From Dimorphilus gyrociliatus (lineage: Eukaryota > Animalia > Annelida), in NCBI GenBank assembly GCA_904063045.1, contig CAJFCJ010000007.1, positions 1,442,698 to 1,506,697 on the forward strand: 64,000 nt of DNA, given 5' to 3'. Below the pieces are notes generated by a model. It was not told the origin of the DNA. It did not search any database and saw only the letters and a list, made by a program, of their open reading frames with translations. Below are positions 1 to 21,920 of the stretch, piece by piece (the first letter of the stretch is position 1; every line of letters starts with the position of its first letter). Made by a program: the position numbers and the translations under genes.

Positions 1-1016
1 GGTTTCACTCCGACTCTGAGAAGTACAAAATTTGTTCATGCTCAGTAAGATTAGTTCATATTAATTAATATAATATTGATATTAATAATATGTATTTTTT
101 ATTAATATTATTTTTAGAAAAGTCCTAAAGCGTAGTATAGCGACAGTATCCAAATTTAAGATTCGTCGTCATGTAAACAAATCACCAACGAAAAAATTGT
201 GTATTTTCTATACTCGTTTTGGAAAATGCTCTAGAAAGGAACGATGTCCATATGTTCATGATAGCACAAAAGTGGCTGTTTGTACTCGGTATCTACTAAA
301 TTCTTATCTTAGTTTGATAATGCTTCATATTGGTCTTGCTTCAAATCAGCTATGCTCAGGGAAAATGCGTCGAAGATAACTGTCCATTCCTACACCAGCT
401 ATCAACAAATCGAATGCCAGTGTGCCATTACTTTCTGAAAGGAGTCTGCAACAAGGAAAATTGCCCATACCTGCATATAAATTTAGGAAAAAATGCCGAA
501 GTCTGCCAGGACTTCGTCAATGGATACTGCTCAAATGGCGCCCACGTTAATTTCAACAAGAATACTATCTTGTTTTTTTTTCTTTTTTAAATAGTTATTT
601 ATAGAACTATAATTTCCTAAACAGTGCAAGAAACTTCACACAAACATCTGTCTGAAAGGTAAAAAATGTAACAACAACCAATGTAAACTGAAACATAAAG
701 TAGCTAGACCAAGAAAAATATCCATTTCAACAGAGGATATTAAGAAAAAGTATATTTTTAGAAAAAGAATTAAACTAAAAAGTCACCTAATTTACTATTA
801 ACAGAGAATTAGACCGGACGACAGTAGATAAAACGCCAACAGGTAGTCTGTCATTTATATCTTTAGGATCCCACGACGATTTGGAAATCAGCCATTCGTG
901 CGATCTTTCTCCCGAAACATTCAGTTAGTACTTGACATTATTGTTTTTTTATTGTAATAAAAATGTTTCTATTTCCAGACGATATTCATCCAAAATTAAA
1001 CTTTGACAGCGATTAA
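1..1016 (+). CDS. ZC3H3: CCCH zinc-finger protein ZC3H3-like, 3' part (5'-truncated by window edge), multi-exon
   Basis: Tandem CCCH fingers CIFYTRFGKCSRKERCPYVHD, CPFLH, PVCHYFLKGVCNKENCPYLH and VCQDFVNGYCSNG. The last exon 979-1016 (..DIHPKLNFDSD*) ends at TAA 1014-1016. Introns are short GT-AG. Confidence 0.8.
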
Positions 1017-1738
1017 ATTCACCTGTTTTTATTTTTTAATGCAGTTTTAGCCTACAGGTGCTATTGTTCATCGAAATTAATCGAACGTTCAGACAAAATC
1101 GGAAATTATTAGTGAGCATAATAACCCAACTGGATCCTCTGTCTTGTCCGGTGTCGTTTAAACTTGTTGGTATTGATATTGTTGATATTTTCTCAGAATA
1201 AACTGAAAGATTAAAAAAATAATTTGAGTGCAATAGATTTTCTATAAGAAATTGTGCAACCCATTTGACTCTCTTTAAGGCCGAAGTACTGCTCCTCCTA
1301 CAATAAAAGTATAACAGACACTTTTTTAGCTTAAAACAAAATTTTTCGTTAAAATAAGCCGGTAATTACCATAATATATTAATTTTCAATCTATTAATAG
1401 GTATAAGAAAAGTTTTAACACCCGTTCCATGGCCTATATGAGGTCTTTGAATAGAGTAGAAATGCACCGGCAGTTTTGAGTGACAGATTCAATTCTAAAA
1501 ATAACTACCTCATTTGCATGCCCGAATTTTCCATAGATTCGCCAAACGTAATGTCTAAAAATAGCTATGATCTTAACGCTGATTGGCTCGCTGTGCGCCA
1601 ATATCCCAAAGTAGTAACACAATGGAGCTATCCCTATATAAAGCGGAACTCCGGCAATTCTCCGTAAAATTTCAAGCGCGAAACATTTAAAACTCTACTT
1701 ATCCGAGTTTGTTTATACACTTTAGTCGCTGTAACAAC

Positions 1739-2347
1739 ATGAATGAACTATCTGACGACATTTTGGCACTCATCAACGGTATATCTAGTAATGACGATGA
1801 ACAAACATCACCTGTCCACTCTTCATCGTATCCCTCTTCTCCTGAGTCGGATTTTTACGCCTCATCTGCATCATCCTTAGACATTCATCAATGCCGACTA
1901 CCCACTGATCATAAAGAAATTAACGTTGAAGAACTTATCAAGATGGTTGGTGAACAACCCCTGCAGAACGAACCAACAAAATTGAATATGACCGACATGC
2001 AGCTAGTATCTCTATCCGTGAAAGAATTAAATCGACAACTTCAAGGTTTGTCAAAAGATGAAATAACCCGTATAAAACAAAGGCGAAGGACCTTGAAGAA
2101 CCGAGGTTATGCCCATAATTGTCGAAACAAACGTCTACAACAAAAAGCCGACTTGGAAAAAGTGAACCAAAGTGTCCTATGTCAGTTCCAAGAATTGAAG
2201 AACCAATTAAACGTCGCAAAGGAAGAAATTGACTCTCTTAGAAGAGAAAGAGATTATTTTAAGAAGGAAAGAGACTATTATAAAACAGAATTTGAAAGGC
2301 AACAATTGACCAGTATTCCAATGTCTCCGGAAAGCGTCATTTTCTAG
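1739..2347 (+). CDS. MAF: Large-Maf-type bZIP transcription factor, intronless, about 202 aa
   Basis: Maf extended homology region plus basic/zipper: [44 protein letters not shown]. The acidic Ser/Pro-rich N-terminus ([14 protein letters not shown]) favours the large-Maf class. ATG at 1739. Confidence 0.88.
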
Positions 2348-2960
2348 AAAAGAAGTTTTTCTACTTTCTATGCACAAACTGAACGAAAGTGTGTCGGAAG
2401 GTCGTGTGAGATTATATAAATTCGATAAAATTTCTATGAATGCATAAACGATTGTAGTATCTATATTTTCCTGCTATTTATTCCTCAAGTAATACAAACA
2501 CTGCCATTTAACATATAGTTCGATCTCCTATAAGATGTTCACCTCAATCTTTAATCAGCTGTATTTTAGCACATGTGGGAGTGAATAGCCAAGAAAGAAT
2601 ACGCCCATCATGTGCCCGATCGATCACCCTTTCTCCCCCTTCCTTTCTCGCTAAGACTTATCTAATTGTCTTATATAGCGTACTATAAAACAGAGCAAGT
2701 TCGTACAGAAAAATTCAAAAATCTGTTAACAAAATATGCAGAAGCTAACTCCTTGCTCCTTGCCCTATTAAATCCTTTACAAATAAAATTTGTACATGCC
2801 ATTTAAGTAGAGTATAAAAATTTATTAACTCACATCTGTATATCAACACATAAATAAAGATATATTTATCCACTCATACAAACTATGTATTCAAATACAA
2901 TATATGTTTAAATATAAAAGTCTAGCTTGTATATATAGTCTACCCTGTTAGCTGGATGTA

Positions 2961-3100
2961 GATATATATATATATATATATATACAATATATATATACTG
3001 TATATATAAATATGTATATATATATATATATACAATTTATATTAGTACATATGTATATCTATAAATATATATATTCATATATATGTACCATATATATATT
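2961..3100. repeat. (AT)n microsatellite / low-complexity tract
   Basis: Long imperfect TATATA run between Maf and WWOX. Confidence 0.95.
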
Positions 3101-3178
3101 CATATTCAAAGAAAACGGACGAAAGGGTGAATGCGCGGCTTCCACTAATCAATTTTTTGTTCTATTTGTATCTTCCAA

Positions 3179-3428
3179 TGACGTCATATTTAGGCATCCC
3201 TACAAACAAGTATCCGCGAAATTTCCAGAATTTAGCTATTAATTTATTGAATGATAGGAAATTACTCTATCGCAAATAGTCGATCGTCATAAATGCAACA
3301 TGTGCCCACGCAATTTATAGAGAATAGTAATTGCTATAGAAACTACTTATACATAAAAAAATTATGTAGCATGACCTCTGTAGATTGTAGGGCGTTACTT
3401 GTGACGTCAATGCAAATTACTGACGTCA
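3179..3428. promoter_or_regulatory. Cluster of three perfect CRE palindromes (TGACGTCA)
   Basis: TGACGTCA at 3179-3186, 3402-3409 and 3421-3428, between the Maf and WWOX stop codons. Function is inferred. Confidence 0.5.
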
Positions 3429-3484
3429 AACGAGAATTACAGGAATACCTGGGAGACACGGCAAACAGACGCGTCAGTTCCTCA

Positions 3485-5632
3485 TTAGCATATGGCAAAC
3501 TCGGTCGGGGCTTCGTTTGGTTGCTCTGCATCAGTCAGCTGTTTGCAGCGTAAGTTTAAGTCGTTCAAAGTAGCAGCTTTCTGTATCATCAATTCCCCCA
3601 AAGACCACAACTCCTTGGCTAAAATATCACTTTGTGCAGCCAAACTAGGCTGACATTCAGAACAGTTCATGAAGTAGCATCCGCCGATTACGCCCACCTA
3701 CTCGCATTTTCCATAAATGAGTTAATTGACGTAAGAAATTAAGTAATCTACTAGCCTGCCTCGATGTGGCTGCATAAACAATAGTAGCAGCACCCTGCTC
3801 TTTCGATTTAGTAAAAGGTCTGCAGAGGGTGTAAGCTAGCATTAACCACCAGGAGTGACGAAATATAGAGGTATATATCATGTTTCCAGGATGCACTGCG
3901 TGACAAATAACCTAAGCGAATAAAAAAATCACTTTATTACACAAAATATAATTCAGGATGCAAAGGAAAGTTGTACATAGCGGAATAACCATCTTAATCT
4001 ATCTAAGAAATGAATACTACAAGAAAGGCTTTTTAATTAGTAAACAAGTCACGAACATATAAACTATATAGATAGATATAGGGCATATACCTGTCTCTGT
4101 ATTCACAGAAAAATTGTAGCAAACAAAATATTGTTATTATTTTATAATATTTATAATTATATTTATAGATACCCTCTTCTTATCCATTCTCCTATTAAGT
4201 TCTTTTACTAAAAGTAGCTTGCACAGATTTGCATTACAATAGGCTTCTAAGGGGCAATAGCCAGACGCTTGGGGATTTAGAGTATTAGCGATAATATCTG
4301 ATGCATTTTGAATCTTCGATTGCCTAATTTCAAATATAACAATATAGTACAACTACATTAAATTAGATTAACGCACCAATGAGCTTCGCATGTAACAGCA
4401 ACAATACGAGAATTTTCAGAGCTATTGTAGCCTGAAGCAACTAAAAGATTTTCAAGAAATTTGCACAGATAGAAATGACCCAAATAATGTGATTGAAATG
4501 TTCTTTCAAACCCGTCAACAGTTTTTTGGAATGGAGGAAACATTTCGCCAGCATTAAGGATAAGAACGTTTAAAGGCCTAAACAAACAAAAGCATATTAA
4601 TAAAAAGAAAACTAAATCGAATAATCAACAAAAGAAATTTACGCACCAGCCCTGAGAAATATATTCCTGCGCAAAACATTTTACGCTTTTCAAATCATTC
4701 AAATCCAAATGTTTAACGTAAATATTCAATTTAACTTTGGAGCTGCAATGAAGAAATAATTGCTTAAGAGTTATTTGTTTATATGCATTTAGTATTAAAA
4801 TTATATTATATACAATATTTAGTATATTTGTAGAATTTCTTTATAAATATTAACCTGTTGTCAATCATTTTAGAAGCTATTAATTCAGCTTTTTTAACAT
4901 CTCTACAGCCCATAGTCACGTGAGCGCCATGAAGAGCTAATGATTTAGCTGTTTCATATCCTTTCAAAATGTATATGTATTATATATTTATTGGTTAGCT
5001 AATTACTTCTAATACCTAATCCAGAACTAGCTCCAGTAACTATTATATATTTTCCCGTTAGGTCTTTTCCATGAAGAAGTTGTAATGTAGTCGTACTTGA
5101 GTCAAATCGACATTTTAAAGGTACAAATTTATAAGAATCATCTTCAATTGCAAATGCTAATCTAGGGTCCGTGAAGGTGGTTTTCTGATTTATATGACTA
5201 AAAAGAATTGCAACCGGAGTAGATCAGTTCTATTTCATAATATACAAACTTACTCAACGTAGACTATCAGTCCTTGATCCGACACTGTCAGTTCCCAACC
5301 GTAAGGTAAATCTGGGAGTAGTTGACCTAAATAAATTTTTATCAGTATTATGCAATGAACAAACCTCCGATTACTCTTTTCTTTTTCCCTGTGTAAGGAT
5401 GTTCCCATTGAGTTTCTTGAGTTTGATGGCTTAAGATAGATTGAAACAATAAACATTCATTATCGCTCGACAAAAAATATATAAAAACTCTTTAAAGAAA
5501 TATTAAAAAAAATATTCCTGACAATCATAAAAAAACTTACTTTGCATAATAGACTTTCCCGTTTGTTGTGACCCTTTCTTCCCAACCACTAGGAAGATCA
5601 TCGTCAGAATCACTTTCAGCTAGTTTGTCCAT
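3485..5632 (-). CDS. WWOX: WW domain-containing oxidoreductase, about 10 exons
   Basis: [32 protein letters not shown] (WW1), [35 protein letters not shown] (WW2), SDR motifs [22 protein letters not shown] and [16 protein letters not shown] at 5632-5630, stop at 3485. Confidence 0.93.
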
Positions 5633-5740
5633 TCCAGATTCGGACACTGTGGAGTTTTTGAATGATTTTCAGTTTATTGTTTGGAATTATTCTTTCGTTC
5701 GATACCCAAGTTTCGACATTCGATCAAAATTTGACTAGAA

Positions 5741-7345
5741 ATGTCAGGAAATCCGCGGACAGGGGCTGATATATGGTCAAGGTTTGTGCCATTTGTTATC
5801 AAAATCTTTAAATTGTAATTTCCCAGTGAATTTTCATATTTGATTTTGCGGCACATTCTTAACATAACAGAGGCGTTGCCTGTCGTAGCTTGTTTTCGCT
5901 CTCTGTTCGACTGCAGTGATTGAATTTTTCTAAATGTTAAAATTTCAGCAATCGACAGCAAAGATTTATAGAGCAACGAATCGCCCAGGTGGAAAAGCAC
6001 CTGGGCGAAATGTGTCAAGCATTCGGTGCTTTTTCTCGAAAAATAGCAAGACTTAGAGACAAAGGTGAGAATCATATTAAGGCTTGGGGCTGTTTCTTTA
6101 ATTTAGCTTTTCATTAGGTGACGAAATATGTCAAAAGATCAAGGACTATTCCGAAACTGAAATTGTTAACCAGAGTACACTAGAAGCATTGTCAACTTTT
6201 GCACAAAACTTTTCTGCTGTTCAAGATTATCGAGATCACGAGGTATTGTTTGCATTCTTTTATTTTTAAATAAAAATTTTACACCATAGCAAATTCAATT
6301 CTTTATTAAAAATAGGTTAAAAGCATTCAACGTAAAGTTGTAAACCCTCTATCGCAATATGGACACAAATGTAAAGATGCAAAAGAAGACTTGAAAAATG
6401 CATTTACCGCACACGAGAAGGATCTAAAAAGTCGTAAAAAGTTTGAAAGAACTCGAGAAAGGGGTTCAATTGATCGTCAAGATATGGTATATTATTACCC
6501 ACATTTTTACGTAAGTTATTGTAAAACTTATTATATGACTATTATTTCGCAATAGACAAGAAAGGAGCATGAATTGCTTAAAACTAGTACACAAGCACTC
6601 CATTCGGAGAAAGTTTTGGAAGAGAAAATGGAGTCGTTTGAAAGACAAAAAGTAAATGATCTGAAAGTGAGTTAATATTTTGTTTAATTAAGTGATTTAA
6701 AGTTCTTTTCTCTTATCTTTTTTTTCAGAACATTCTTATGGATTTCGTGAATACCGAATTAATATTTCACGCAAGAGCTTTGGAACACTTTACAAATTGT
6801 TATAGATCTTTGCAGGATATTGATGAGGAAGCTGATATAGCGGTAATATTTCTTTATGAACAAATAAAATGAAACAAATTTGTTTTTCATATCAGAGTTT
6901 TAGATCCGTACTGAATCCTTCTCAAACTGAAGGTAGATTAAATATACAACGGCAAAATTCAAGGTCGTCTTTGAACGATACACGATTATCTTCTCAATCT
7001 GCAACGCCACTTCAAACTCGTTCGGCAACACATAGCCGTCAACATTCGACTTCTTCGGCTAATATGTTTGTTGCTAAATCTGAAATTGGACGATCACCTC
7101 AGGCTCAAGCAAGAACATTCAATGGCCAGAATCGAAATGATAGGAGGGGATATGCAGCTGCTAGTAGCGAAGACGATGATCTTGAAGATGATGATGAGGA
7201 TGAAAGCGAAGATGAAAGTGAAATTACTAATCCACCAGTTAATAGAGGACAAGGAAGAGGCTCGAATATTATAAGAGGGGGTCGGGGTGGAGGTAGGCCT
7301 AATTCTGCAGGCCCTGTTAGAGGAAGAGGGGCCTTTGGGCGATAG
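5741..7345 (+). CDS. CIBAR1: FAM92/CIBAR BAR-domain ciliary protein, multi-exon
   Basis: Exon 2 encodes RFIEQRIAQVEKHLGEMCQAFGAFSRKIARLRDKG, matching the FAM92 N-terminus. Later exons give FERQKVNDLK and ELIFHARALEHFT. ATG at 5741 (MSGNPRTGADIW). The tail is acidic and RGG-rich. Confidence 0.85.
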
Positions 7346-7629
7346 TTAGTAAGGTGCTAATATGCATAAAGTAAACACTGTCTCGTCCTATTTTAACCGT
7401 CCGTGATTGTTTATAGAGTATAATTTGTAGATAAAGCAACATTATATTTTTTGAATTAATACATTCCGCGAATAAGTACCGCCACCTACAATTTTATCAT
7501 GTAACAACCAATCAGAGAACTGAACGCTGTCGTTCTTTAAAAATGCACTTGTATAAAAGGCTACGGAAAGGGCAACCTGACAATTCTAGTTGAGCACGTT
7601 AAATTATAGTTATACGGGAACGGTGGAGT

Positions 7630-10600
7630 ATGAGCCCCGAATATCTAGTCGTTTTATTTCAAGTGACAGGAGGTCAGAATGGTGAAAACCTTGGCTCCGA
7701 CGAAGAAGAAGTCGTCTTTTTCGTTTACTTACTTTATGACATAGCGTCTAATAAAGTAGTTTGTGTGCAATCCTATTACTGCCGGCCCACGCAAAATGAA
7801 CTTCGAGAAACTATTTTAACTGAAGAATGCAAAATTGTCACTGGCCTTAATGAAGATCTCATAAAATCTGCTCCTCCTCTGGAGCAAGTTCTGGACGAGG
7901 TTAGTTTCATTCTCTGTCAATAGGCCTAAGTGCTCAGTTTTCACAGTTTTTAGCTGTGTCTATCACGTGTTTTATATATAACTTTAAAACGTAGCATATA
8001 TATTTAATTTTAATGTGCTTTTTTGCCTATATAGCATTTATGTGCTAATTCATTTTTTTTCAATGTGTTCTTCAGTTCGAACGTTTTCTCGTTCAAAAAG
8101 AACTTCACCCCCTCCATGGCGGTTCATCCTTCTTTTTATGCTGCGATGGCCAACTTCACTTACGACTAGTCTTACATCCAGAAGCTCAGAGAAAAAACAT
8201 TTCATTGCCTACATACTTTTATAAATTCTTCGACCTGAGGAAGGCTTTTAAGGAACACTACAAGGTTGAAACTGTCCATTGCATCAAAGACATGCTAGAC
8301 CGTATCCTTTAAAGTTTTTACAACTTTTTTGTAACACTACATACGTCCCGCATTCATGAAAACGTGACGTTAGAGGTTGGCAGGCGCTTAATTTACATAT
8401 TGCTGTAACGGTGCAGGTGCGTCCCGCATTGGACGTCGTCGAAGAAAATAAACCCTTATATAGATAGCCATGTCAGAGAGACGCCTTTCGAAACGTCAGC
8501 TGCGGTACACGTGGCTTGATGACTCCTCAATTTCGATTGAGTTATCCAGCTGTTGCGAGCATCAAACGGGCGTCCAAATGCTTTGTTCTGTAGAGCTAGG
8601 TGTTGTGTATTGAGAAACGTGCATCTATTCAGCTGTCGCGCACTAAAACGCGTGTTCTGAACGATATACTGCCTATAACGAATATTATAAAATATTCCTT
8701 AACCGTTCATCAAATATAGACTTGAATTTAGAAGTGGACCAATCTGTGGAATATGGCGTCAGACACTGCCAAGATATGGCTAAAATTATTCAAAGATTGT
8801 TGGACGATCGTAAGTTTTTTATTAATAATAATCATTATTTGGTATTATTATTTCAATTCATAGTACCTTGTATAATATCGATTTTTAATATACTCTTACC
8901 AATCCGAGTATATAGTTGTTTTTAATCACTTATTATATTGTTAATTGTTAGTTAGAGGAGTTAGGAACGAGGGCCATTAATCGTCCTACTAATCCTCCAC
9001 TTTAATAGAGTGGAAAAACTTGAATGGTTTAGCAATAGAAGTATACGTTGTAACTTGCGTGTATATTTACGTAGAAGTGCCCACTGTCTTACTAAGCTTC
9101 TAGGTCAATAGTATATATCGAGTTTATACCGCCCTTTACGACATTCGAACGCTTATTAAAATTTCTCACGCTTCAGGCTATCAGTTCAGCGATCCCGAAA
9201 CAATCAGCAATCGTCTGGAACCCGGCATATGGTTAGTACTCTTTATCTATTTTTTCCGCCAATCACACTTTAGGCCTAAGTATTTTGAAACAATCCTACT
9301 TCTTCTCTTTATGTCACTTTTAGACTAAACAGTATTTCATTATTTGCAATAGAAAAAAATCGCAGCATTTATAAATAGTTCGTTCGCATTGAAATCGCAT
9401 TTTCGCTATAGACTGGTGCTTTTATATGATGTGTTCTATTCTATTTCACAGTTCAAAGAGTGAGAACGTTGACGACGACACGGTAATTAGAGCTAGAGGT
9501 TTGCCATGGCAGTCTTCTGATCAGGACATCGCGCTTTTTTTTAAAGGATTAAATATTATAAAGTAAATAAAAGAGCAATATTTTCAGACGTTTCAAATTG
9601 ATTTGCTATAATATGAAAAAAATGATTGAACAGGGGTGGAGTTGCTTTATGCCTTAGTCCACAAGGGCGGCGAAATGGCGAAGCTTTAATACGATTTGAA
9701 TGTAAGGAACATAGAGATTTGGCGCTAAGAAAACATAAACATCATTTGGGCCAACGCTATATTGAAGTCTATAAGGCTTCTGGAAAAGATTTTATAAACG
9801 TGGCTGGGGGAGGGAACGCAGAAGCTCAACAGTTTTTGGAGAAGCATAACAATGAAGGCCAAGTCATTGTTCGAATGCGGGGACTACCCTATTCTGCTAC
9901 CTCTCAACAAATCGTGAGTGTGCCTTTTGCTAACTAGCTTTATCCTCTTTCTTAACTCATTAATAATAAATGTGGTAGCGGGTGAGGAAAAGTTTTAATC
10001 TCTGCTCTGACGATCAGGCATTTTGTTAAGGTTATAGTGACTTTGTAAAGCAGTCTTTATGGCAAAGAAGGGACTGGGTGGGGGGCTTTTGCCGTGGTAG
10101 AGGAAAACATTTTGAACATAAAAACGACATATTTAAAAGATTTTCTATCAATATAAACAGACCCGTAAACGATGTCTATAAATGGTAAGTCGCAGAAATG
10201 GGGAAGTGATTTAGCGGGTCTGGTGTGGTTTCCTGTGTTTTAAACGGAATAAGCTTGCATTTACAAATAATATCATAATAACCAAACGTATAACCAACAG
10301 TATGTAGATGTATCTAAAGTATATATGTATATAGATATATAGATATACACTTTAGAAACTACACTTACGTACAAAAACACTATCTATACAGCCTATGGTT
10401 TATACAGTGCATAAACTTGAACACGTTATTTAATCTCTTATAGCTAGCTAACATAAATATTGTTTAGCATGAGCAATGCACATAATACGGAATGAATTTT
10501 TTTCATAACACTTTTTCATACATAAAGATTATTAATTTTTTGTTTATTTAAAAAATTCAAGATACACAGAAGTTTCTTGTATATTGAGAGACAGACAGAC

Positions 10601-10859
10601 AGACAGACAGAGAGAGAGAGAGAGAGAGAGAAAAAAAGAATCTAAAAATAATGTCCCATATGTTGGTTAAAATCAAGAAACAAAACTGTTCAAGAGTATG
10701 AATAGGTAGTGTAGTAGCTTAAGAAAATTTTCTTTTTTATTGAGACGACGATATACGATAAGCATATTTGCTTGTGCAGAGTTAACACATTGCATTGCCT
10801 TTTCACTCAATAGATATCTAATAAGCTTTGCACTGTATATTCTCATGTTGTATACGTAG

Positions 10860-10890
<31 letters not shown>

Positions 10891-12468
10891 ATATATATAC
10901 GTATATATACTTCAAGTGCGAACTTAAATTATATATATAATGTTAAGTTCGCATAAAACGGGTATACGTATTTAACAGTTTTGGTAGTGGTTATAACGAC
11001 TGCAATTTGAACGCGATTGGAGTGTTTGTAATGCGTTTATGAAATGATTTTCTTTTTATAAACGACAGCGCAATGTCTTTCTCTGGTGATTTTTAGTCTT
11101 TCTCTCATCAACATTTAAAAAACATGTGTTCTGTACATATGATACAGTATATTTTCAATATGTATTACATAAAATAAATTCTTAAAATAAGCGTATGGCT
11201 ATATATAAAAGTTGTGTGCTATCACATAGAAAGTATGCAAGTCTTACATATAGTCAGTAGTTTGAAAATCCTTGGTATTTTATTGTTATTATTATTATTG
11301 TATGCAGTATTTGAATCAACTAAGCATATAATACGGCACATACTATTTAGAAGGTGTATGTTACATATTATGCGCTTCGTATGAAATTATAAAAGTAGTT
11401 AGAGGGAAAGTTTTGTGTTCGTATAATTACAAAAGAAAACTTGTACAGATCGATTTCTTCCAAACCGGACCGAATAGTGTACAAGTTCTAGATGGCCAAG
11501 AAGGTGTCTTATTTGTCCATCATGCCGATGGTAGAGCTACTGGAGACGCTTTCGTTCTATTTGCAAACGATGAAGAAGCTGATCTGGCTTTACTAAAACA
11601 TCGGGAATGTATTGGATCAAGATACATTGAATTGTTCAAGAGTACAACAGCCGAAGTTCAACAGGTTCTCAATCGTTCGATGGACCCTCGTGCACACGCT
11701 ATGGAAGCCGGTGTTGCACAAACGGTTAATGTCTCAACTGCTGCTGCCGCTTCATTTATCGACCCTTCCGCCGCCACACAAATGGCATTGATGGGGTTTG
11801 CTCCGCCCACAAATAATCTATTGCCAGTTCCGCAACAGATGATAACAACTGGATCGCAAAAGGACTGTATAAGACTTAGGGGTTTACCATACGAATGCAG
11901 TGTCACAGATATCTTGGCATTTCTTGGGGAATTTTCAAAACACATTGTCTTACAAGGTGTACATATGGTTATTAATAGTACCGGCGCCCCAAGTGGTGAG
12001 GCCTTTATTCAAATGGAAGGTGAACTAGCCGCTGAAGCAACAGCTATAGCTAAACACCGAAAAACAATGACAACAATAAATGGTGTAGCATGTTCGAAAA
12101 AGCGCTATGTTGAAGTCCTTCAGTGCAGCGGCGACGAAATGAATATCATTCTAACGAATGGCCTTCCATCTGTTGCTTCGCCTCTTGCGACACCATTGTT
12201 ACAAGCGGTTGCGCCTTCACCTCAAAGAGCATTAATGCCCACACCTACTGTTCCCACTCATCCAGCAATTTTAAGCCCTCCAATGGCTTATCCTGCTCCG
12301 GCATTTGCCTCGCCAATTAATCATCGCTCTTTAGCGACAGCGACAACCTTACCAAACTATGTTTCACCACTACCGACCACTGTTAACCCATACCAGCCTT
12401 TCTTCTACTTGTACAACGGTTATCCAAGCCCTCCAGTTTCACCTCCAACAGAAGTTCTACCGCGTTGA
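7630..12468 (+). CDS. ESRP1: Epithelial splicing regulatory protein (ESRP/fusilli): DnaQ-like N-terminal domain plus 3 RRMs
   Basis: [102 protein letters not shown], and C-terminal YPSPPVSP. Confidence 0.95.
8302..8719 (+). other. U12-type (minor spliceosome) GT-AG intron in ESRP
   Basis: 5' splice site GTATCCTTT at 8302 and branch point TTCCTTAAC at 8696-8704, followed shortly by AG. Splicing restores DML-D/H-LNLEVDQ in frame. Confidence 0.85.
10590..10632. repeat. (GACA)n(GA)n microsatellite in ESRP intron
   Basis: gacagacagacagacagacagagagagagag... Confidence 0.9.
10858..10910. repeat. (AT)n microsatellite in ESRP intron
   Basis: atatatatat run. Confidence 0.9.
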
Positions 12469-14525: not shown

Positions 14526-16031
14526 CTAATTTGGCCAAATTTTATTAAACAATTCCATAAACGAATCGTAAATCATGAAAGTAATAGCAACATCCAAACA
14601 GACTCTTGATAATCTAGGTAAAGTTCCCTTGTAGAATCTAAAAAGTATTTAAAGGGTTAATTATAAATAAGTACAAAAGTAGTATAATATAGAATATAAA
14701 TATTAAAATATCTTACGCAAGAGGTCCTTCGTGCTTCAATATTTTTGCAGCACAATCAAAAGTGTTCTTGTATTTTTTAGCTTCTAATCCCTGAAAGTAT
14801 TTAAATAATTTATTTACATTTCAAACATCTAATTGTTTAAGTCTAAATTTAACCTGCATTCTAGTTTTAACAACATCGAGAGGTGTGTTTCCAAATACAG
14901 AAGCAGCACCAGCAATAGCTCCAAAAAGTCCAGTAAGTAATTTAGGAACAGACTTTCCTTTCTCATCTCCTCTATACATATCTTTTAGAGTTTCAACAAC
15001 GAAAAACCTAATAGCTTGATTACTTCCTTGTTTCATGATAGTCGGGGTTAATCCTTGATAGCATCCTCGAAATCCTTCAGTTTTGATGATACTTCTGACA
15101 CCATGAAAGAATCCCTTAAACTTTGGATTTGCAGATGCTTGATCATTGATAAACTTTACTTTTACAGTTTCCATAGGAGTAACAGCAAATATAGCTTCAC
15201 AAACGCCAGCTCCCAAACCACATAATAATTTTTTTTGGGCAGATAAATTTCCTTTTTCATCAACAGCTCTTTTCTTAAATTCTTCAAAAGCTCCAAATCT
15301 TACAGCAGATTTCGGAATTGAACCGTACAAGAGAACGGATAAACCTCTATAAAGACCAAAGAATCCATGGTCACGTACAGTTAACTTCGCGCAATCCACA
15401 ATACCCTTATAGCGTTTAGCGCCTCCTGATTTTTCATCCAATTGCAATTGTGTCTTAATATATTCCGTTGGAAAGGTGATACATATTTCAATACCCCCAG
15501 TAATTCCACCTATATTAGTTAGAAATTATACAATCAATACAATTAGTTGGCACGTGTTACAGTGATTAAATCTGGAAGGGTTCCGCATATGCGGGAGAAT
15601 GTTTACGTGACAAGCCTACTTTTACTCAGTAAATTGACTCTATCGATTGACTGTCTTACATCGCAACTGCAAATCGATATTTCTTTATATTTTATAACCA
15701 CTGCAATCAGGCGATACAGACTTGTAAATGTCATCTTTGAACTTTGAACCGTTGCCATGCTTTAAATGATCCTTCGACCAATTTTAAACATAACACCTGT
15801 GGTTTTCGTTTTTTTTCAAATAGTCTTAAGTTAATAAGTTCAAAGATTCATTTGAACGTTTGATTATAAAACTATTCTAAATATATAGAGGTCTAAGATA
15901 GAGCGATAATCCAAAATTATACCAGCGATGATGCCCTTCAAACTGCTGTTTGTGCCTGCTGGAGAGGCTGCCATCTCGCTTCCTTGCCTATTATAATAAG
16001 GATTAGATAGTCTCGTTCCAAACTTGTCCAT
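14526..16031 (-). CDS. SLC25A1: Mitochondrial tricarboxylate (citrate) carrier
   Basis: [101 protein letters not shown]. Confidence 0.95.
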
Positions 16032-16241: not shown

Positions 16242-19200
16242 ATGAATACTAGAGAAAAAAGAAATGGAAAGAAAAAAGATACTGTTGCCCAACCATTGAA
16301 AGATGTTGCTAAAGGTATGATCCGAGCATATTTGAAGGCATTTCACAGAATAAACACGTGTAATCGAACGTTTTTGTTACAGTAAAAAAGTCATATGCTT
16401 CCAAAGAATTGACAGCGGCAGCAATAGTAGAACAAGAAACTTATCCTAGGGTGTGTAAAAAAAAAGAGAATAACATTGTGATCTTTTGTATATAATAACA
16501 ATTATTCAAAATACAATTTTTATCAGATCGAGCTCGAAGAAGAAGTTGAGAATAATCTTGTAAAACTATTAAAAACAAATTTAGAAAATAGATTAAAAAG
16601 TACTGTAATATCAAATCGGTTGACAGCCAAAAAGTTAACAGTAAGTTATATTTCTAAAGTAGTTTAATTTGCATTATTGTTCATTTTTTCTAATATATTT
16701 GCATAAATATTCTATAGGATGTATATAACGCATTATTTGACTATGGCTTCAAACAAGAACAAATAGAAATTGCCATGGATCATGTTCTACCTCAAGGGGG
16801 AGATTTAATAGATGCTTTAGATTGGCTATGTTTAAATCTCAAGAGTGGTAAGAATTTTTATGCTAAATTAATTCTATAATACATAATTATCTACGCTACT
16901 AAACAGATCAATTGCCGAAAGGATTCTGTCACATTAAAAAAACTGATACTAAACCTCGTGAAAAATTCCAAGAAAATTTAACAAACAAAAGAATAGAAAC
17001 TAAAAGTGTTAAAGCTCCACCTAAAGTAGATTTACAAATTTAATTAATACTTAAAATGATATTTAGAATAAATGTTGATTTATTTGCTAAAACGTTAGAA
17101 AGATATAGAATCGGATAAGGCAAATATGAAAGATTGGATATTAAGATATGCAGAGGATACTGATTCAAGCGATGATGAATCAAATGCTAAGAAATCTGTT
17201 GAAGAAAACCCCGTAAATAATCTTTAAATATAGCTAATGGAACATTTTTGAATTAGTAAGAATTTTTTGTTAATTTTTAGAATGAAAAATACGCAAGAAT
17301 TGATTATCTTATTGCCGAAACAAAGCAAAAAGCTCAATTGGCAAAAGCCGAAAGGAATAAGAAGGCTAGTAAAGAATTGAGTACGAAAATTAATCAATTA
17401 ATGCAAGGTATATTATATTTGATTAAAAATGTTTCCTCTAGTTTTAAATTATAAAATATCGAACTATTTTAAATAGAACTGAGAACAATTGAGAAGCATC
17501 CTCAATTTAATCTTTCAAGCGTTCAAAAATACGAACCACCTCCAGAAGGTAAAGTTCCAGACTTAACAAGTGATTTGGTCCACAAGAAGAGTTCCATTGA
17601 TGATGATGACAATGATGACGAATGCGATGTAGGTCTCCTTGGTTTCGACAGTTTAGAATGTTCTAATCCAGGTTTTCATCCAATCATAAAAACAAACTGT
17701 GCGTTTCAGTTGTAACACTAGAATTTGTTTTTAATAGAGAAGATTGAAAAGCCTAAATTCCAAAAGAGATCTTTCTCCTATACAAGACAACAGTGGACTG
17801 GAAAATCTCCAAAACAATTTTTAATCGATTGGCTACGTAAAAATCTAAAGAATAGTCCACCACCTAGATTTAAACCTATACAAGTATCCGGATCATTATG
17901 GAGAAGCAGGTGAAATTCTTAAAAGTGCAACTGATTACTTGATAAACCAATTTCATTCAAAATAATATATTTTAGGTGTATAGTTAATCGAAAGGATGGT
18001 GATGTTGAAGTAATACCAGATATTGTTTGCGAAAATGTCAAAGAGGCTGAACATTTAGCTAGTACACTTGCGCTATTTCAGCTATGCGGCGGCCAGGTAA
18101 AAAAAAATTAATTAAAAAACTTTTTTATTATTACTTCATCAATTTGAATTTCAGAGAATTCATCAATTATTACCACCTCCTTATAGAGATATTTGGTTGG
18201 AATGGAAAAAAGCAGAAGAGGATATTGTACAAAGTGGTAAAGAGCAAATAAGTAAAGTAATGCAATTTAAATTTCTATTAGACTTTTTACGGCATATATG
18301 CTTTGTATACAGTAGACTGTGTACTATAAAAATATACATCTATTATAAAAATGTATTGAATTTTACAGCCCAGAGACGCTTTTGTTTCTCAATTAGTCAA
18401 GAAACTATCAAAGATCAAAGTATCCCTATCCGATGTCTCTAATAACGAACAAGATAACGTTTGTAACGATTGGGAAGATATACCTGTATCACCCGTTGTA
18501 AGATTTTCGCCTTCCTCCTTGATCATCTTTTTAATTACACTATATTCGATTAGACAACATCTAAACTAAACCTAAAAGATCCCACTATAAAGGCGCGCTG
18601 TCGCGATATTCTTTTAGCTGCTTCAAAACAACAAGAATACGAGAAATTGCTAAAAACGCGAGAACAATTACCAGTTTATAAATACAGGTATATTATAATA
18701 ATATTTGAGTTAAATATTTAGTTTAATTAATCTGTAGAGATGAAGTTATCAGCGCAATAAACAAATATGATGTTACAATTATTTGTGGTGAAACTGGCAG
18801 TGGAAAATCTACTCAAATACCTCATTTTCTCTTACAAGTAGGTGGATTAGTGTATCACTTTAAAAAGATGGATTCTTTATAAGATTTTTGTCTTTTATTA
18901 ATGTTATTTTTTCATTTTTTTATCTCTCTCTATACAGGATTTACTAGTGGATAAAGATTTCTTGGATTGTAATTTAATTTGTACTCAACCTAGGAGAATA
19001 TCTACCGTATCTTTAGCTTCTCGAACTGCTCTTGAGATGAATACTAATAAACCAGGCAGTAGAGATAGTTTAATAGGATATCAAATTAGGTTTGCTTTTT
19101 ATTAATAGTGGGTATTAGAAGATATTTTATTCTGTTTAACTTCAATAGATTTGAAGCAAAGACTTCACCAACGATGAAGTTGCTATATTGCACAACGGGA

Positions 19201-21920
19201 GTGCTTTTACGAAAGATTCAAAATAATGTTCTACTGAATGGTACAAGTCATGTAATTATTGATGAAGTTCACGAACGTTCAGTTGACTCGGATTTCTTAT
19301 TGGTTACCCTAAAGAATTTGGTAAAAGAGAGGAAAAGGTTAAGAAAACCGTTAAAAGTAATTTTAATGAGCGCTACTCTCGATGCTCAAAAATTTATTGA
19401 TTACTTCGAGTCGTCGGATGATGATGTTAGGCAAATATTAGATGTAAAACTGGTATCACTACCAGGAAGGACGTTTCCAGTTCAAAATTTTTTTCTCGAG
19501 GATATCGTCGAGCAAACTGGTTTTTGTCCTGAAGAAGCTGAAGTTAACGATAACTCAAATTATGTAATTATTACGTCAGATGCAATGATAAATATTTATT
19601 ATATTTTAATTAATTTAGGTAACGGAAAATCTTTCAATATCAGCTAAAGGAGGTAAATCTTTTAAGGAACAAGTCTCTTATTCCACTCAGGAGGTAGAGC
19701 ACAACGACTTAGAACTGGATACAACAAAATATAGTGCCCAAACAATTCAAACAGTAAATCGGTTAAACGGCATATTAAAACTCAATTTAGATATTATTTT
19801 GGTAATTAAAATAATTATTAGAAACTCTTTCTATTATTAGTATGTTTAATAACAATTTTTTTTCAATATAGGAAACAATAAAATTAATAGAAAGGAAAGA
19901 AGAATTTAATCAAGTTCAAGGTGGAATATTAGTATTTTTACCCGGTTTAGCTCATATACAAGAATTATATGATATGATCCTTTATGACGCAGAACTGTCA
20001 AAGCGCAAGTAATGAATATCTACTGTATTTTTTTAAAGATATTAATAGTATTACAATATTCTATTCTTTTAAAGGCACAAAGTTCTGCCGCTGCACTCAA
20101 CTTTATCAAACGATAGCCAGGAGGAAATATTTAAATATCCTCCTAAAGGTCATAGGAAAATCGTTTTGGCAACAAATATTGCCGAAACTGGAATTACAAT
20201 TCCAGATATTGTATTCGTTATAGACAGTGGCAAAGTAAAGGAAAACTGGTAAAATAAAATATTTAGGAGTTGTAAATTTGTTAAATGTTTGCTTTATAAC
20301 TCTTTATTGTTTAGGTTTGACGAAAATACTCAAATGAGTCGTCTTAAGGAAGTTTTTGTTAGTCGGGCAAGTGCTGATCAAAGAAAAGGTCGAGCCGGTA
20401 GGGTTCGTGAAGGATTTTGCTTCAGATTATATACACATATGAGGTATTTTTCTTTCTGTGTTTCTCTCCCCCTCCTGTCACTTCAATTTTCCTTGCGATA
20501 TTTTCTAGGTATAACAGTATGAAACAATTTACAACTCCAGAGATTTTACGAGTACCACTGGAATCTCTCTGTCTGCATATCTTAGTATGACGAACTATTT
20601 ATAGTATTATTGACGTCTATTCATTAATTTACCACTCTAAACTTTTTATAGAAATGCGAGGAAAAGGATCCCGAGAAAATATTATTGTCAGCTTTAGATC
20701 CTCCAAGACCTGAAGCTATTAGGAAATCTCTATCACTACTACAAGAAATAGGTGCTGTTGATTGTATAAACATGGTTCTAACGCCGCTTGGTCATCATTT
20801 ATCAACTCTTCCTGTCCATGTGAAATTAGGACGTATGTTAATATTCGCCGCTATATTTGGTGTAACAGAGCAAATAGTAAGTCTTCTAAAAGATATAATC
20901 CAACTATAAACAAACTATTTCTCATAAATAAATAGGCCATAATAGCCGCCAGTATGAATGAAAAATCACCTTTCTACGTTCCTGTACGAAAGAAAGAAGT
21001 TGCTGAAAATGCATTAATGAATCTAAGCGTTTCAAATTCGGATCAATTGACAATATTGAATGCATTTACTAAGTAAATTAGTTTGAATATATTATTCAGC
21101 TTTTACACAAAACATTAATTAATTTTTTGTTCGCAGATGGCAAGAATCTAGAGCAAAGGGGAGAAACGCTGAAAAACTTTATTGTGATATGAATTTCATT
21201 AAGAGGAGCACTATGATAGAAATTGAGGTAGAAACTTTAAAATATAGTGCTTTTTATATAAAATTTCATTAACTTTTATTATAAAAAAAAACAACTAGAA
21301 CATCTCAAAGGAGCTAATGAAATTAGTAAATTCAATTGGCTTCAATAATGATTCTCAATTGATCGGGAATAAACTAACTGCAAAGGACGAAAATATGATT
21401 AAGCTTATTCTAACTGGTGGAATTTATCCCAACATTGGTCAAATTAGGAAAATTGAAAGAACTGAAGGTGATAGAACGCCCCTGACCGATTGTTTAACGA
21501 ATCAAGGAAAAGTGTTAGTTCACCCATCGTCTGTCAACAAGAACATTAACATGGACGGCTTCATAATCTATCACGAAAAAACGAAGGGCGAGAAGAATAC
21601 ATTTATTCGAGGGACAACTTTAATTGACAACATCTCACTCTTAATGTTCGGAGGTGATATTCAAGTATTTCACGCTAATCAGACTGTAACGGTTGATGGA
21701 TGGATTAAATTAAAAGTAAGGACACTGGCATTTTAATTATATACTTGAAATTGTAAGAAATATTTTCCCTTTTCAGGCTTTTGCACGAACTGGTGTTATA
21801 TTCAAAGAAGCAAGAAAGGTTTTAAATGATTTATTAGCAAAAAAATTAACCAATCCTGCAGTGAACTTGTCTGATAATCGTTTAGTACATCTTTTAATAA
21901 AAGCTGTAACAATTGTTTAA
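16242..21920 (+). CDS. DHX29: DEAH-box RNA helicase DHX29, many short introns
   Basis: [15 protein letters not shown] and [18 protein letters not shown] (DHX29-specific), [40 protein letters not shown]. The last exon 21777-21920 ends at TAA. The start ATG is approximate. Confidence 0.92.

Follow-up and report, generated by a model that had tools for sequence, protein, structure and literature searches.

The MAF locus of vertebrates has been published as a genomic regulatory block (GRB) in which WWOX is a bystander (Synorth, Genome Biol 2009, PMC2745767), and ancient microsyntenic gene pairs have been described in metazoans (Irimia et al., Genome Res 2012, PMC3514665; Touceda-Suarez et al., MBE 2020, PMC7530604). 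Conserved neighbourhoods of developmental transcription factors of this kind are a main line of evidence for long-range regulation constraining genome architecture. Gene content is also shared through bilaterian ancestral linkage groups (Simakov et al. 2022, PMC8809688), and residual macrosynteny has been reported in Dimorphilus gyrociliatus, a marine worm with a very small genome in which ancestral linkage is eroded yet visible and in which neither operons nor trans-splicing occur (Martin-Duran et al. 2020, PMC7854359). In the human literature MAFA and ZC3H3 are handled as a single locus, the longest alpha/beta-cell DMR being annotated MAFA/ZC3H3 and both genes lying at 8q24.3. A preliminary description of the present DNA had pointed to both of these vertebrate neighbourhoods, and the literature is in keeping with it on MAFA/ZC3H3 as well as on MAF-WWOX, where WWOX is termed the 'alleged bystander' (PMC2745767). 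Neither ZC3H3-Maf nor Maf-WWOX is named in the main texts of PMC3514665 or PMC7530604, and a literature search found no paper combining ZC3H3 with microsynteny.

The window analysed here is a stretch of 64 kb of Dimorphilus DNA, the first base of which corresponds to about base 1,442,698 of contig CAJFCJ010000007.1 (GCA_904063045.1), as placed via the Maf protein. Within 12.5 kb it carries an array of ZC3H3 (+), a large-type Maf (+), WWOX (-), FAM92/CIBAR (+) and ESRP (+), so that ZC3H3 and Maf are in tandem, Maf and WWOX convergent, WWOX and FAM92 head-to-head, and FAM92 and ESRP in tandem. The public annotation, converted to window coordinates, lists a CCCH-finger gene of 329 aa on the + strand (-818..1016), a bZIP_Maf protein of 202 aa (+, 1739-2347), a protein of 441 aa with WW and adh_short domains (-, 3485-5632), and a single fused FAM92 and RRM_11 model that begins at 5741 (+); it counts four genes because FAM92 is fused with ESRP. 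Single-exon Pfam scans, which were run independently of the annotation, agreed with it and placed CCCH at 197-590, bZIP_Maf at 1709-2347, FAM92 at 5989-6117 and 6738-6872, and RRM within 11413-12468. Reading of the sequence gave 722 bp between the end of ZC3H3 and the Maf ATG, 1137 bp between the stop codons of Maf and WWOX, 108 bp between the ATG codons of WWOX (5630-5632) and FAM92 (5741-5743), and 284 bp between the FAM92 stop (7345) and the ESRP ATG (7630). Annotation, exon scans and sequence reading thus confirm that there are five adjacent genes in 12.5 kb in these orientations, and annotation and sequence confirm that ZC3H3 precedes Maf in tandem and that Maf is convergent with WWOX, all as first described.

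The window contains the 3' two-thirds of ZC3H3 (1..1016, +), the annotated start lying 818 bp before it. Exon reading, together with annotation and Pfam, gave five tandem CCCH fingers, with finger exons at 118-289, 350-545 and 625 to ~800. The exon at 351-545 (65 aa) scored 78-100 bits against proteins named ZC3H3, and its top relatives, at 85-100 bits, are proteins of 750-1200 aa with fingers close to the C terminus, several of them named ZC3H3. The relatives so named come from five vertebrates, two molluscs and an annelid, and include gar, shark, pike, newt, Littorina and Paralvinella. Against CPSF4 this exon reached 58.7 bits. Its closest matches are thus to ZC3H3 rather than to CPSF4 or another family of CCCH proteins, in agreement with the original assignment. 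The Dimorphilus product is short, at 329 aa compared with 750-1200 aa elsewhere.

Maf (1739..2347, +) is a single-exon gene for a bZIP protein of 202 aa. It matched Pfam bZIP_Maf with an E value of 8e-26 and, in the PDB, MafB, MafA and MafG. In the tree, the small Mafs formed a clade with 99/95 support and the window Maf fell outside it, on the large-Maf side of the split; Pfam and tree together uphold its placement as a large Maf, the class of MAF, MAFA, MAFB, NRL and traffic jam. Alignment showed a 14-residue insertion in the leucine zipper and a C-terminal S-P-x-S-P-E/D motif that is common to large Mafs. A second large Maf of Dimorphilus, P0004, which the preliminary description had overlooked, is located on contig 32, outside the ZC3H3/WWOX neighbourhood and beside a FOG/ZFPM-like gene. 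P0004 has the better N-terminal motif and a shorter branch than the window Maf, and the two are mutual closest relatives at 47%. Given this paralogue, the window Maf does not qualify as a one-to-one orthologue with a canonical N-terminal activation motif; it is a divergent co-orthologue, the more divergent of two lineage-specific paralogues.

Search tools support the orthology of ZC3H3, Maf, FAM92 and ESRP, while the identity of WWOX is suggested by domain architecture. The putative WWOX orthologue (3485..5632, -) has many short exons, and its annotated product of 441 aa unites N-terminal WW and, after them, short-chain dehydrogenase sequences in a single protein (WW and adh_short in precomputed Pfam). 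Exon 1 encodes a WW half-domain with generic WW matches, among them 1wmv WWOX. The protein is presumed to resemble human WWOX strongly. The FAM92/CIBAR gene (5741..7345, +) encodes a BAR-domain protein with a disordered, acidic, RGG-rich tail and was identified through two exons that matched Pfam PF06730 (8.5e-8 and 4.2e-5) and through the annotated product. ESRP (7630..12468, +) encodes the N-terminal ESRP-specific domain and then RRMs. Among the matches listed in its search, at least 120 in number, all had RRM_11 and nearly all DUF8400 in addition, and every name was ESRP (ESRP1/2) or fusilli. Further matches were to the PDB entries for ESRP1 RRM2 and RRM3, RRM3 at 1e-25. ESRP1/2 or fusilli, and not hnRNP F/H, are thus the best matches, and the orthologies first proposed for FAM92 and ESRP both stand. 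ESRP exon 1 matches the N termini of ESRP proteins. FAM92 and ESRP were read as two genes because the FAM92 frame closes with a stop at 7345, a TATA-like box follows near 7553, and the alignment of ESRP orthologues to the ATG at 7630 begins at their residue 2; the public model would therefore appear to have fused them wrongly.

Non-coding conservation was assessed by footprinting against one collinear sibling species, a single species pair for which background identity is 66-72%. The block 1475..1700 (+), which covers the Maf promoter and contains CCAAT-like motifs as well as a TATA box near 1633, was 90% identical. The proximal Maf 3'UTR (2348..2640, +) was 91% identical and thus better conserved than the Maf coding sequence (85%); AATAAA signals follow at ~2782 and ~2853. 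Past both likely poly(A) sites lies an intergenic element, CNE-a (3096..3200; 91% identity), in which CCAAT is followed by TGACGTCA at 3179-3186, and for which no Rfam match and no stable fold were found. A second element, CNE-b (3341..3484; 94% identity, with ~85 bp identical), is directly 3' of the WWOX stop codon and probably sits in the WWOX 3'UTR; it contains two copies of TGACGTCA, at 3402-3409 and 3421-3428. The motif occurs three times in the 64 kb window, each time inside CNE-a or CNE-b, against an expectation of 0.52, and none of 100 shuffles reached three. TGACGTCA is the CRE motif, so that both elements are CRE-bearing.

The spans of ZC3H3, WWOX and FAM92 were at 0.72-0.75 identity, near the background of 0.66-0.69 for this one species pair, and this single sibling-species comparison found no conserved non-coding DNA inside them, WWOX introns included. 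By comparison, the ESRP span 7630-10300 was 89% identical with its introns included, and the FAM92-ESRP spacer (7346..7629, +), which probably is the ESRP promoter, was 93% identical. Conserved non-coding DNA was accordingly found only beside Maf, with one element reaching the WWOX 3'UTR, and around ESRP. The proposal that the array is a GRB with Maf and perhaps ESRP as targets and ZC3H3 and WWOX as bystanders is in part consistent with these positions, and the elements may regulate Maf; inside the supposed bystanders and FAM92 this species pair showed none.

It could be that the tight pairs are kept by local transcription and not by long-range Maf enhancers, with WWOX and FAM92 sharing a bidirectional promoter, and FAM92 and ESRP being joined by read-through or co-transcription. 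The 108 bp between the WWOX and FAM92 start codons, the joined FAM92 and ESRP model of the public annotation and the strong conservation of the spacer between these two genes would fit. However, the WWOX-FAM92 spacer itself was at background (0.73), FAM92 ends in a stop codon of its own, ESRP starts at a separate ATG that matches orthologue N termini, and operons and trans-splicing are excluded by the genome paper (PMC7854359). This explanation is considered very improbable.

The neighbourhoods of these genes in other animals separate the contacts of the array. In the crinoid Anneissia, a verified ZC3H3 (P0126) and a large Maf that carries the canonical N-terminal motif are 5.6 kb apart, with Maf inverted. 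In the starfish Acanthaster, a CCCH gene of 1067 aa ends 8.3 kb upstream of a large Maf on the same strand; it is a candidate ZC3H3, the locus having covered only its last 1.7 kb, with an N gap. With the human literature, ZC3H3 and Maf are thus neighbours in at least two distant phyla, and the pair recurs in three lineages spanning deuterostomes to spiralians if the putative starfish ZC3H3 is counted as a candidate. As weak negatives, the 10 kb flanks of ZC3H3 showed no Maf in Paralvinella or gar, and those of Maf showed no gene of any kind in Patella (limpet) or hummingbird. The ZC3H3-Maf adjacency looks truly ancient.

Maf-WWOX adjacency was found in Dimorphilus and, from the literature, in vertebrates, and in no other invertebrate among those examined. 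In Anneissia IST1 and not WWOX adjoins Maf, and in Acanthaster and Patella the 10 kb around Maf showed no WWOX. One interpretation is that only ZC3H3-Maf was inherited and that Maf-WWOX is a coincidence of compaction within one linkage group, free of regulatory constraint. This would agree with the restriction of the pair to Dimorphilus among the invertebrates examined, with WWOX introns devoid of conserved elements, and with linkage groups that are eroded yet visible, such that neighbours often share a human paralogon. On the other hand, in a linkage group of several hundred genes, the chance that Maf would come to lie beside the partner it has in vertebrates, and convergent with it as there, is well under 1% by a rough estimate, and CNE-b in the WWOX 3'UTR with CNE-a just beyond it is how a shared constrained spacer would be expected to look. 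Coincidence is therefore rated unlikely, and the convergent Maf-WWOX pair is probably ancient.

The downstream half of the array behaved differently. FAM92 was absent from the 10 kb upstream of ESRP in Helobdella (leech) and Chamberlinius (millipede), by gene calls and by tblastn; in the leech the upstream gene is DLIC, in the millipede it is a TLD gene, and PLCG also adjoins millipede ESRP. No FAM92 or WWOX exon was detected by tblastn in any other-animal locus examined, WWOX exons being short, and WWOX-FAM92 contact was seen only in Dimorphilus, a comparison that is indirect. Neither FAM92-ESRP nor WWOX-FAM92 was thus found as neighbours in two distant phyla. The human orthologues of IST1, DLIC, PLCG, the TLD gene and FOG/ZFPM are taken to lie on 16q or 8q.

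These results bear on the preliminary claim that the bilaterian ancestor had the five genes together in a single uninterrupted block, which vertebrates split after duplication and which Dimorphilus keeps as an intact miniature regulatory block. All five have human orthologues on 8q or 16q, and this exceeds the local background because the genes directly downstream, DHX29-like and SHPRH, do not belong to 8q/16q. In human, CIBAR1 and ESRP1 share band 8q22 and are assumed to follow each other at ~1 Mb, with the order and strand that FAM92 and ESRP have in Dimorphilus. Human PLCG2 lies ~2 Mb from MAF, and the PLCG gene that adjoins millipede ESRP is therefore a hint of a formerly shorter distance between ESRP and Maf. 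The FAM92-ESRP spacer is, moreover, strongly conserved. Against this stand the lack of FAM92 within 10 kb upstream of leech and millipede ESRP, IST1 in the place of WWOX beside crinoid Maf, the absence of a second species with WWOX next to FAM92, and the two human halves of the array, presumably tens of Mb apart. A block of five is on balance improbable. An extension of it, in which the 12 kb are a miniature of megabase vertebrate landscapes with the CRE elements and the ESRP spacer and introns as an irreducible regulatory core locking the neighbours, is likewise thought improbable. What survives of the claim is ZC3H3-Maf, from echinoderms and the human literature, and probably Maf-WWOX, from the vertebrate GRB; FAM92-ESRP did not hold in leech and millipede, WWOX-FAM92 was seen only in this array, and the evidence stops short of a full five-gene ancestral block.

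The Maf and ESRP neighbours of other animals are 16q-type genes (IST1, DLIC, PLCG, FOG) and speak for a single linkage group of ancestral origin, not for a block of five genes. The explanation favoured, with moderate confidence, is that the array is a linkage-group remnant with ZC3H3-Maf, and probably Maf-WWOX, as its old core, held by Maf cis-regulation. The array would be a retained fragment of the bilaterian linkage group matching human 8q/16q (20q and 14q for other large Mafs), which genome compaction would have squeezed to 12.5 kb. WWOX-FAM92 and FAM92-ESRP would derive from the same old chromosome and have been made neighbours in the dinophilid lineage, or kept together only there. Maf cis-regulation would be the likely force keeping ZC3H3, Maf and WWOX together: the control DNA of Maf may lie in the short flanking spacers, as the promoter block, the 3'UTR and the two CRE-bearing elements extending into the WWOX 3'UTR, and a break on either side of Maf would separate it from control elements or damage a neighbour. 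The gene identities and order, the reappearance of ZC3H3-Maf in echinoderms and the positions of the conserved DNA are all observed here; that the elements regulate Maf, and that the neighbours persist for this reason, is inferred. Counting against this explanation are the inverted Maf of the crinoid and the fact that the window Maf is the more divergent paralogue. The shared 8q22 location of CIBAR1 and ESRP1 also counts against it, since FAM92 and ESRP may to some extent have been loosely linked from early on.

Should ZC3H3, Maf and WWOX be a trio of ancient origin, its Dimorphilus version would fit the whole landscape into ~5 kb, with a 230 bp promoter block and two CRE-motif elements of ~100-140 bp as candidate Maf control elements, and would be easy to dissect compared with the megabase-sized vertebrate WWOX/MAF region. 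The locus also marks a limit of synteny read off human chromosome bands, since three of the four claimed contacts are explicable, partly or wholly, by same-chromosome linkage.

As in the vertebrate MAF GRB, a large Maf, a developmental regulator, lies by WWOX with 3' ends facing, and conserved non-coding DNA goes with Maf rather than with WWOX. The vertebrate block differs in that conserved elements extend across and beyond a WWOX of ~1 Mb, whereas the Dimorphilus WWOX spans 2.1 kb with introns at background, and the elements, identified here by sequence conservation, are only in the 1.1 kb spacer and the WWOX 3'UTR. The array is also like the bilaterian linkage groups, in that the genes found beside Maf and ESRP, whether in crinoid, leech, millipede or Dimorphilus, have human orthologues on 16q or 8q, as a shared ancestral chromosome would lead one to expect. 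Macrosynteny predicts a shared chromosome and not adjacency, and so explains FAM92 near ESRP but not the repeated contact of ZC3H3 with Maf. For that contact the likeness is to the ancient metazoan microsyntenic pairs, in which a transcription factor and an unrelated, housekeeping-type neighbour are kept across phyla, as ZC3H3 and Maf are in an annelid, echinoderms and human.

The window Maf protein was located on assembly GCA_904063045.1, contig CAJFCJ010000007.1 (4.62 Mb), where the public annotation places four gene models, given here in window coordinates: a CCCH-finger gene on the forward strand (-818 to 1016, 329 aa), a bZIP_Maf gene on the forward strand (1739-2347, 202 aa), a gene with WW and adh_short domains on the reverse strand (3485-5632, 441 aa) and, on the forward strand from 5741, a single model in which FAM92 and RRM_11 are fused. 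Pfam scans of single exons agreed with this annotation, and the order and orientation of the five genes in the preliminary description, with ZC3H3 and Maf on one strand, Maf convergent with WWOX, and WWOX divergent from FAM92, which is followed by ESRP, were exactly borne out. The spacers measured 722 bp from the end of ZC3H3 to the Maf ATG, 1137 bp from the Maf stop to the WWOX stop, 108 bp from the WWOX ATG to the FAM92 ATG and 284 bp from the FAM92 stop to the ESRP ATG. The fused public model (5741-12468) presents FAM92/CIBAR and ESRP as a single protein longer than 1028 aa, with both FAM92 and RRM_11 domains. Because the FAM92 frame stops at 7345, with a TATA-like box downstream near 7553, and because the ATG at 7630 aligns with residue 2-5 of leech, millipede, and mammal ESRP proteins, two genes are recognized here and the public model is probably a mis-fusion, to which a genuine FAM92-ESRP read-through may be the alternative.

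The identities of the genes other than Maf were examined by domain content and similarity. Exon reading gave five tandem CCCH fingers for the first gene, from exons at 118-289, 350-545, and 625 to about 800. A query of its 65 aa exon (351-545) against 1.84 billion representative proteins returned 728 proteins at E<=1e-10; the best of these, proteins of 750-1200 aa, showed 45-56% identity, and the matching region lay near their C terminus. The source name "zinc finger CCCH domain-containing protein 3" is carried by relatives in Littorina, Paralvinella, Batillaria, Polyodon, Esox, Pleurodeles, Lepisosteus, and Scyliorhinus. The solved structure nearest to this exon, CPSF4, was rejected as the identity of the gene, as it reached 58.7 bits against 78-100 for the ZC3H3-type proteins and its architecture was also contrary. 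On these exon bit scores and source names the CCCH gene is taken to be a ZC3H3 orthologue, as it had been named at the outset, and at 329 aa the Dimorphilus protein is a very short one. The last exon of ESRP gave 292 matches at E<=1e-10; among the 120 best of these all had RRM_11 and nearly all had DUF8400 as well, and the source names among the 120 matches listed were ESRP1, ESRP2, or fusilli only. In addition, ESRP exon 1 matched the ESRP-specific N-terminal domain, and the window sequence hit RRM2 and RRM3 of ESRP1 in the PDB. FAM92/CIBAR was recognized by the Pfam FAM92 domain on two exons together with the annotated product. The WW and short-chain dehydrogenase architecture of the remaining annotated product, and a WW half-domain in its exon 1, identify a predicted WWOX orthologue, which we take to be strongly like human WWOX. 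A word search with a 79 aa WWOX exon gave no candidate, and the WW and FAM92 exons gave generic matches or none against the PDB.

The relationship of the window Maf to other Maf proteins was studied using a maximum-likelihood tree of 31 named proteins picked from the 120 matches listed, a set from which vertebrate small Mafs were absent and for which the midpoint root was used for drawing only. A small-Maf clade (99/95) stood apart from a group containing all large Mafs and both Dimorphilus sequences, which excludes a small Maf as the identity of the window protein. The C-terminal S-P-x-S-P-E/D motif of large Mafs is present in the window Maf, together with a weak form of the large-Maf N-terminal motif. 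The second Dimorphilus large Maf (P0004), which was absent from the preliminary description, is a 188 aa protein encoded with introns on contig CAJFCJ010000032.1, and its branch is shorter and its N-terminal motif better than those of the window Maf. The genes flanking it encode an EF-hand protein and a FOG/ZFPM-like zinc-finger protein, and are not ZC3H3 or WWOX. The two proteins are mutual closest relatives at 47% identity and are therefore lineage-specific co-orthologues, the window Maf being the more divergent copy, with a 14-residue zipper insertion at residues about 165-178 (window about 2230-2275). This insertion resembles a duplicated ERDY-x-KK heptad stretch and is missing in all seven other aligned Mafs. 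As read from the protein sequence, it would alter zipper register or length, and perhaps the dimer partners.

Gene neighbourhoods in other animals were compared over 10 kb on either side of a chosen gene, a span that makes positives strong and negatives weak. In the crinoid Anneissia japonica, a Maf of 237 aa lies on the opposite strand 5.6 kb beyond a verified ZC3H3 orthologue (P0126); this Maf has the canonical large-Maf N terminus and a starfish large Maf as its best match. Upstream of the large Maf of the starfish Acanthaster, on the same strand, a CCCH-finger gene (1067 aa) with the same Pfam signature ends at a distance of 8.3 kb; this gene is a candidate ZC3H3 only, and its last 1.7 kb, which holds an N assembly gap, gave no tblastn match to the window exons or to ZC3H3 proteins. 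In human, the longest differentially methylated region between alpha and beta cells is annotated MAFA/ZC3H3, and both genes are at 8q24.3. No Maf was present within 10 kb of ZC3H3 in Paralvinella or in gar, where the ZC3H3 gene is 110 kb long, and no gene was called within 10 kb of Maf in Patella or of MafA in hummingbird. Human ZC3H3 and MAFA are presumably direct same-strand neighbours about 7 kb apart. Chance adjacency of any one given gene pair can be put, roughly, at about 1 in 10,000 per genome; against this figure, a ZC3H3-Maf contact that recurs in Dimorphilus, in two classes of echinoderms and in human has been inherited. A literature search found no paper linking ZC3H3 to microsynteny; supplementary lists of gene pairs may contain ZC3H3-Maf.

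The Maf-WWOX pair has a published counterpart in a vertebrate regulatory block, where MAF is the target and WWOX the "alleged bystander" (PMC2745767). The neighbour on the other side of the crinoid Maf was IST1, not WWOX, no gene was found within 10 kb downstream of Maf in starfish or limpet, and a literature search gave no paper linking WWOX-MAF synteny to invertebrates. Adjacency of WWOX and FAM92 was seen only in Dimorphilus and the sibling species of contig SRR23372228_11968. With regard to FAM92-ESRP, the upstream neighbour of ESRP in the leech Helobdella is a dynein light intermediate chain gene, while in the millipede Chamberlinius a TLD-domain gene lies upstream of ESRP and PLC-gamma downstream. 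The leech negative is not strong, because Helobdella is known for lost synteny (Martin-Duran et al. 2020, PMC7854359). Searches by tblastn with the window FAM92 and WWOX exons against all fetched loci of other animals found nothing. For human FAM92A1 and ESRP1, the band is 8q22 in both cases; we take them to be separated by about 1 Mb and about nine genes, with order and strand as in Dimorphilus.

The human orthologues of the genes next to Maf and ESRP in other animals presumably all lie on 16q or 8q, the positions being, as we assume, 16q22 for IST1 and DYNC1LI2, 16q23 for PLCG2, 16q24 for ZFPM1, and 8q23 for ZFPM2. Such neighbours are the signature of one ancestral linkage group, and FAM92 and ESRP would therefore lie near Maf and WWOX without any need for a five-gene block. 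Linkage blocks in Dimorphilus have been described as "eroded but still visible" in its genome paper (PMC7854359). The downstream flank contains a mitochondrial carrier gene (14821-15447), a DHX29-like DEAH helicase gene (19108-21736; PDB DHX29, 1e-19) and SHPRH (27826-29114), and upstream of the window lie an adhesion-type 7tm_2 receptor gene (795 aa ORF) and a C2H2 zinc-finger gene; no gene recognizable as 8q/16q was present in either flank. Since the downstream genes fall outside the 8q/16q group, five of five exceeds the local background, and some probability is thus left for the intact ancestral block of five genes proposed in the preliminary description. Of that proposal, ZC3H3-Maf stands, as it recurs in crinoid and human, and Maf-WWOX probably does so through the vertebrate block, while FAM92-ESRP finds no support in leech and millipede, where ESRP has other neighbours. 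The most likely interpretation of these data, which we regard as reasonably probable, is that the segment would be a remnant of an 8q/16q-type ancestral linkage group, in which the ZC3H3-Maf adjacency would be ancient, the Maf-WWOX adjacency probably ancient, and FAM92 and ESRP would have become, or stayed, direct neighbours in this lineage only.

Conservation along the array was explored by footprinting against a 49 kb Logan contig of run SRR23372228, which provides one species pair. Along about 19 kb of the window and the flank upstream of it, this contig was collinear and showed the same gene order, with DNA identity of 75-84%; identity reached 89% for the Maf protein and 93% for the last ESRP exon. 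By these identities the lineage is probably a close congener or a cryptic species, and serves well for footprinting. Unconstrained spacers, taken as background, showed an identity of 0.66-0.69, and a value of 0.72-0.75 was obtained across the genes ZC3H3, WWOX, and FAM92, counted with their exons. Identity was 0.85 for the Maf CDS, 0.90 for the Maf promoter (1475-1700), 0.91 for the proximal Maf 3'UTR (2348-2640), 0.93 for the FAM92-ESRP spacer and 0.89 for ESRP including its introns (7630-10300). Between the Maf and WWOX 3' ends, two conserved elements, CNE-a (3096-3200) and CNE-b (3341-3484), reached 0.91 and 0.94, respectively. In the ESRP introns at 8100-10300, a stretch that includes 8302-8719, identity was 0.86-0.99 per 100 bp (0.99 at 9100-9199), which equals or exceeds the identity in exons of the genes alongside; such conservation may point to alternative exons or to splicing elements with an autoregulatory role. 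A simple TA-rich repeat is present at 10851-10917, within an ESRP intron, and further analysis of the array covered 1-10800 and 11413-12468.

CNE-b shares about 85 identical bases with the sibling lineage. All three copies of the TGACGTCA (CRE) motif in the 64 kb window were found within CNE-a or CNE-b, at 3179-3186, 3402-3409, and 3421-3428, and thus within 250 bp between the Maf and WWOX 3' ends, where 0.52 copies were expected in the window and three were reached in 0 of 100 shuffles. We regard the cluster as a candidate CREB/ATF/bZIP-responsive element. By the positions of poly(A) signals, CNE-b would lie in the WWOX 3'UTR and CNE-a past both gene ends. An RNA gene at either element was rejected, as neither gave an Rfam match at E<=1 or a convincing fold (best z -2.4). 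A long (TA)n/(TATA) microsatellite (2960-3095) separates the Maf 3' end from CNE-a and is poorly conserved in the sibling lineage.

Since the conserved elements, by feature identity, sit at both Maf and ESRP, these look like the constrained, regulated genes of the array, in agreement, for this one species pair, with the initial guess that Maf, and perhaps ESRP, were its targets. Elements of a target gene within bystander introns, a classic feature of a genomic regulatory block, were not seen in the footprinting against the sibling lineage. The candidate Maf elements would instead occupy the short spacers and run into the end of WWOX, and such an overlap would by itself make a chromosome break costly. 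From this arrangement we infer a compact regulatory block. The convergent Maf-WWOX order is common to Dimorphilus and the vertebrate MAF block, but whereas the classic block has its elements in bystander introns, the form suggested here is a compact one, with the elements in the spacers.
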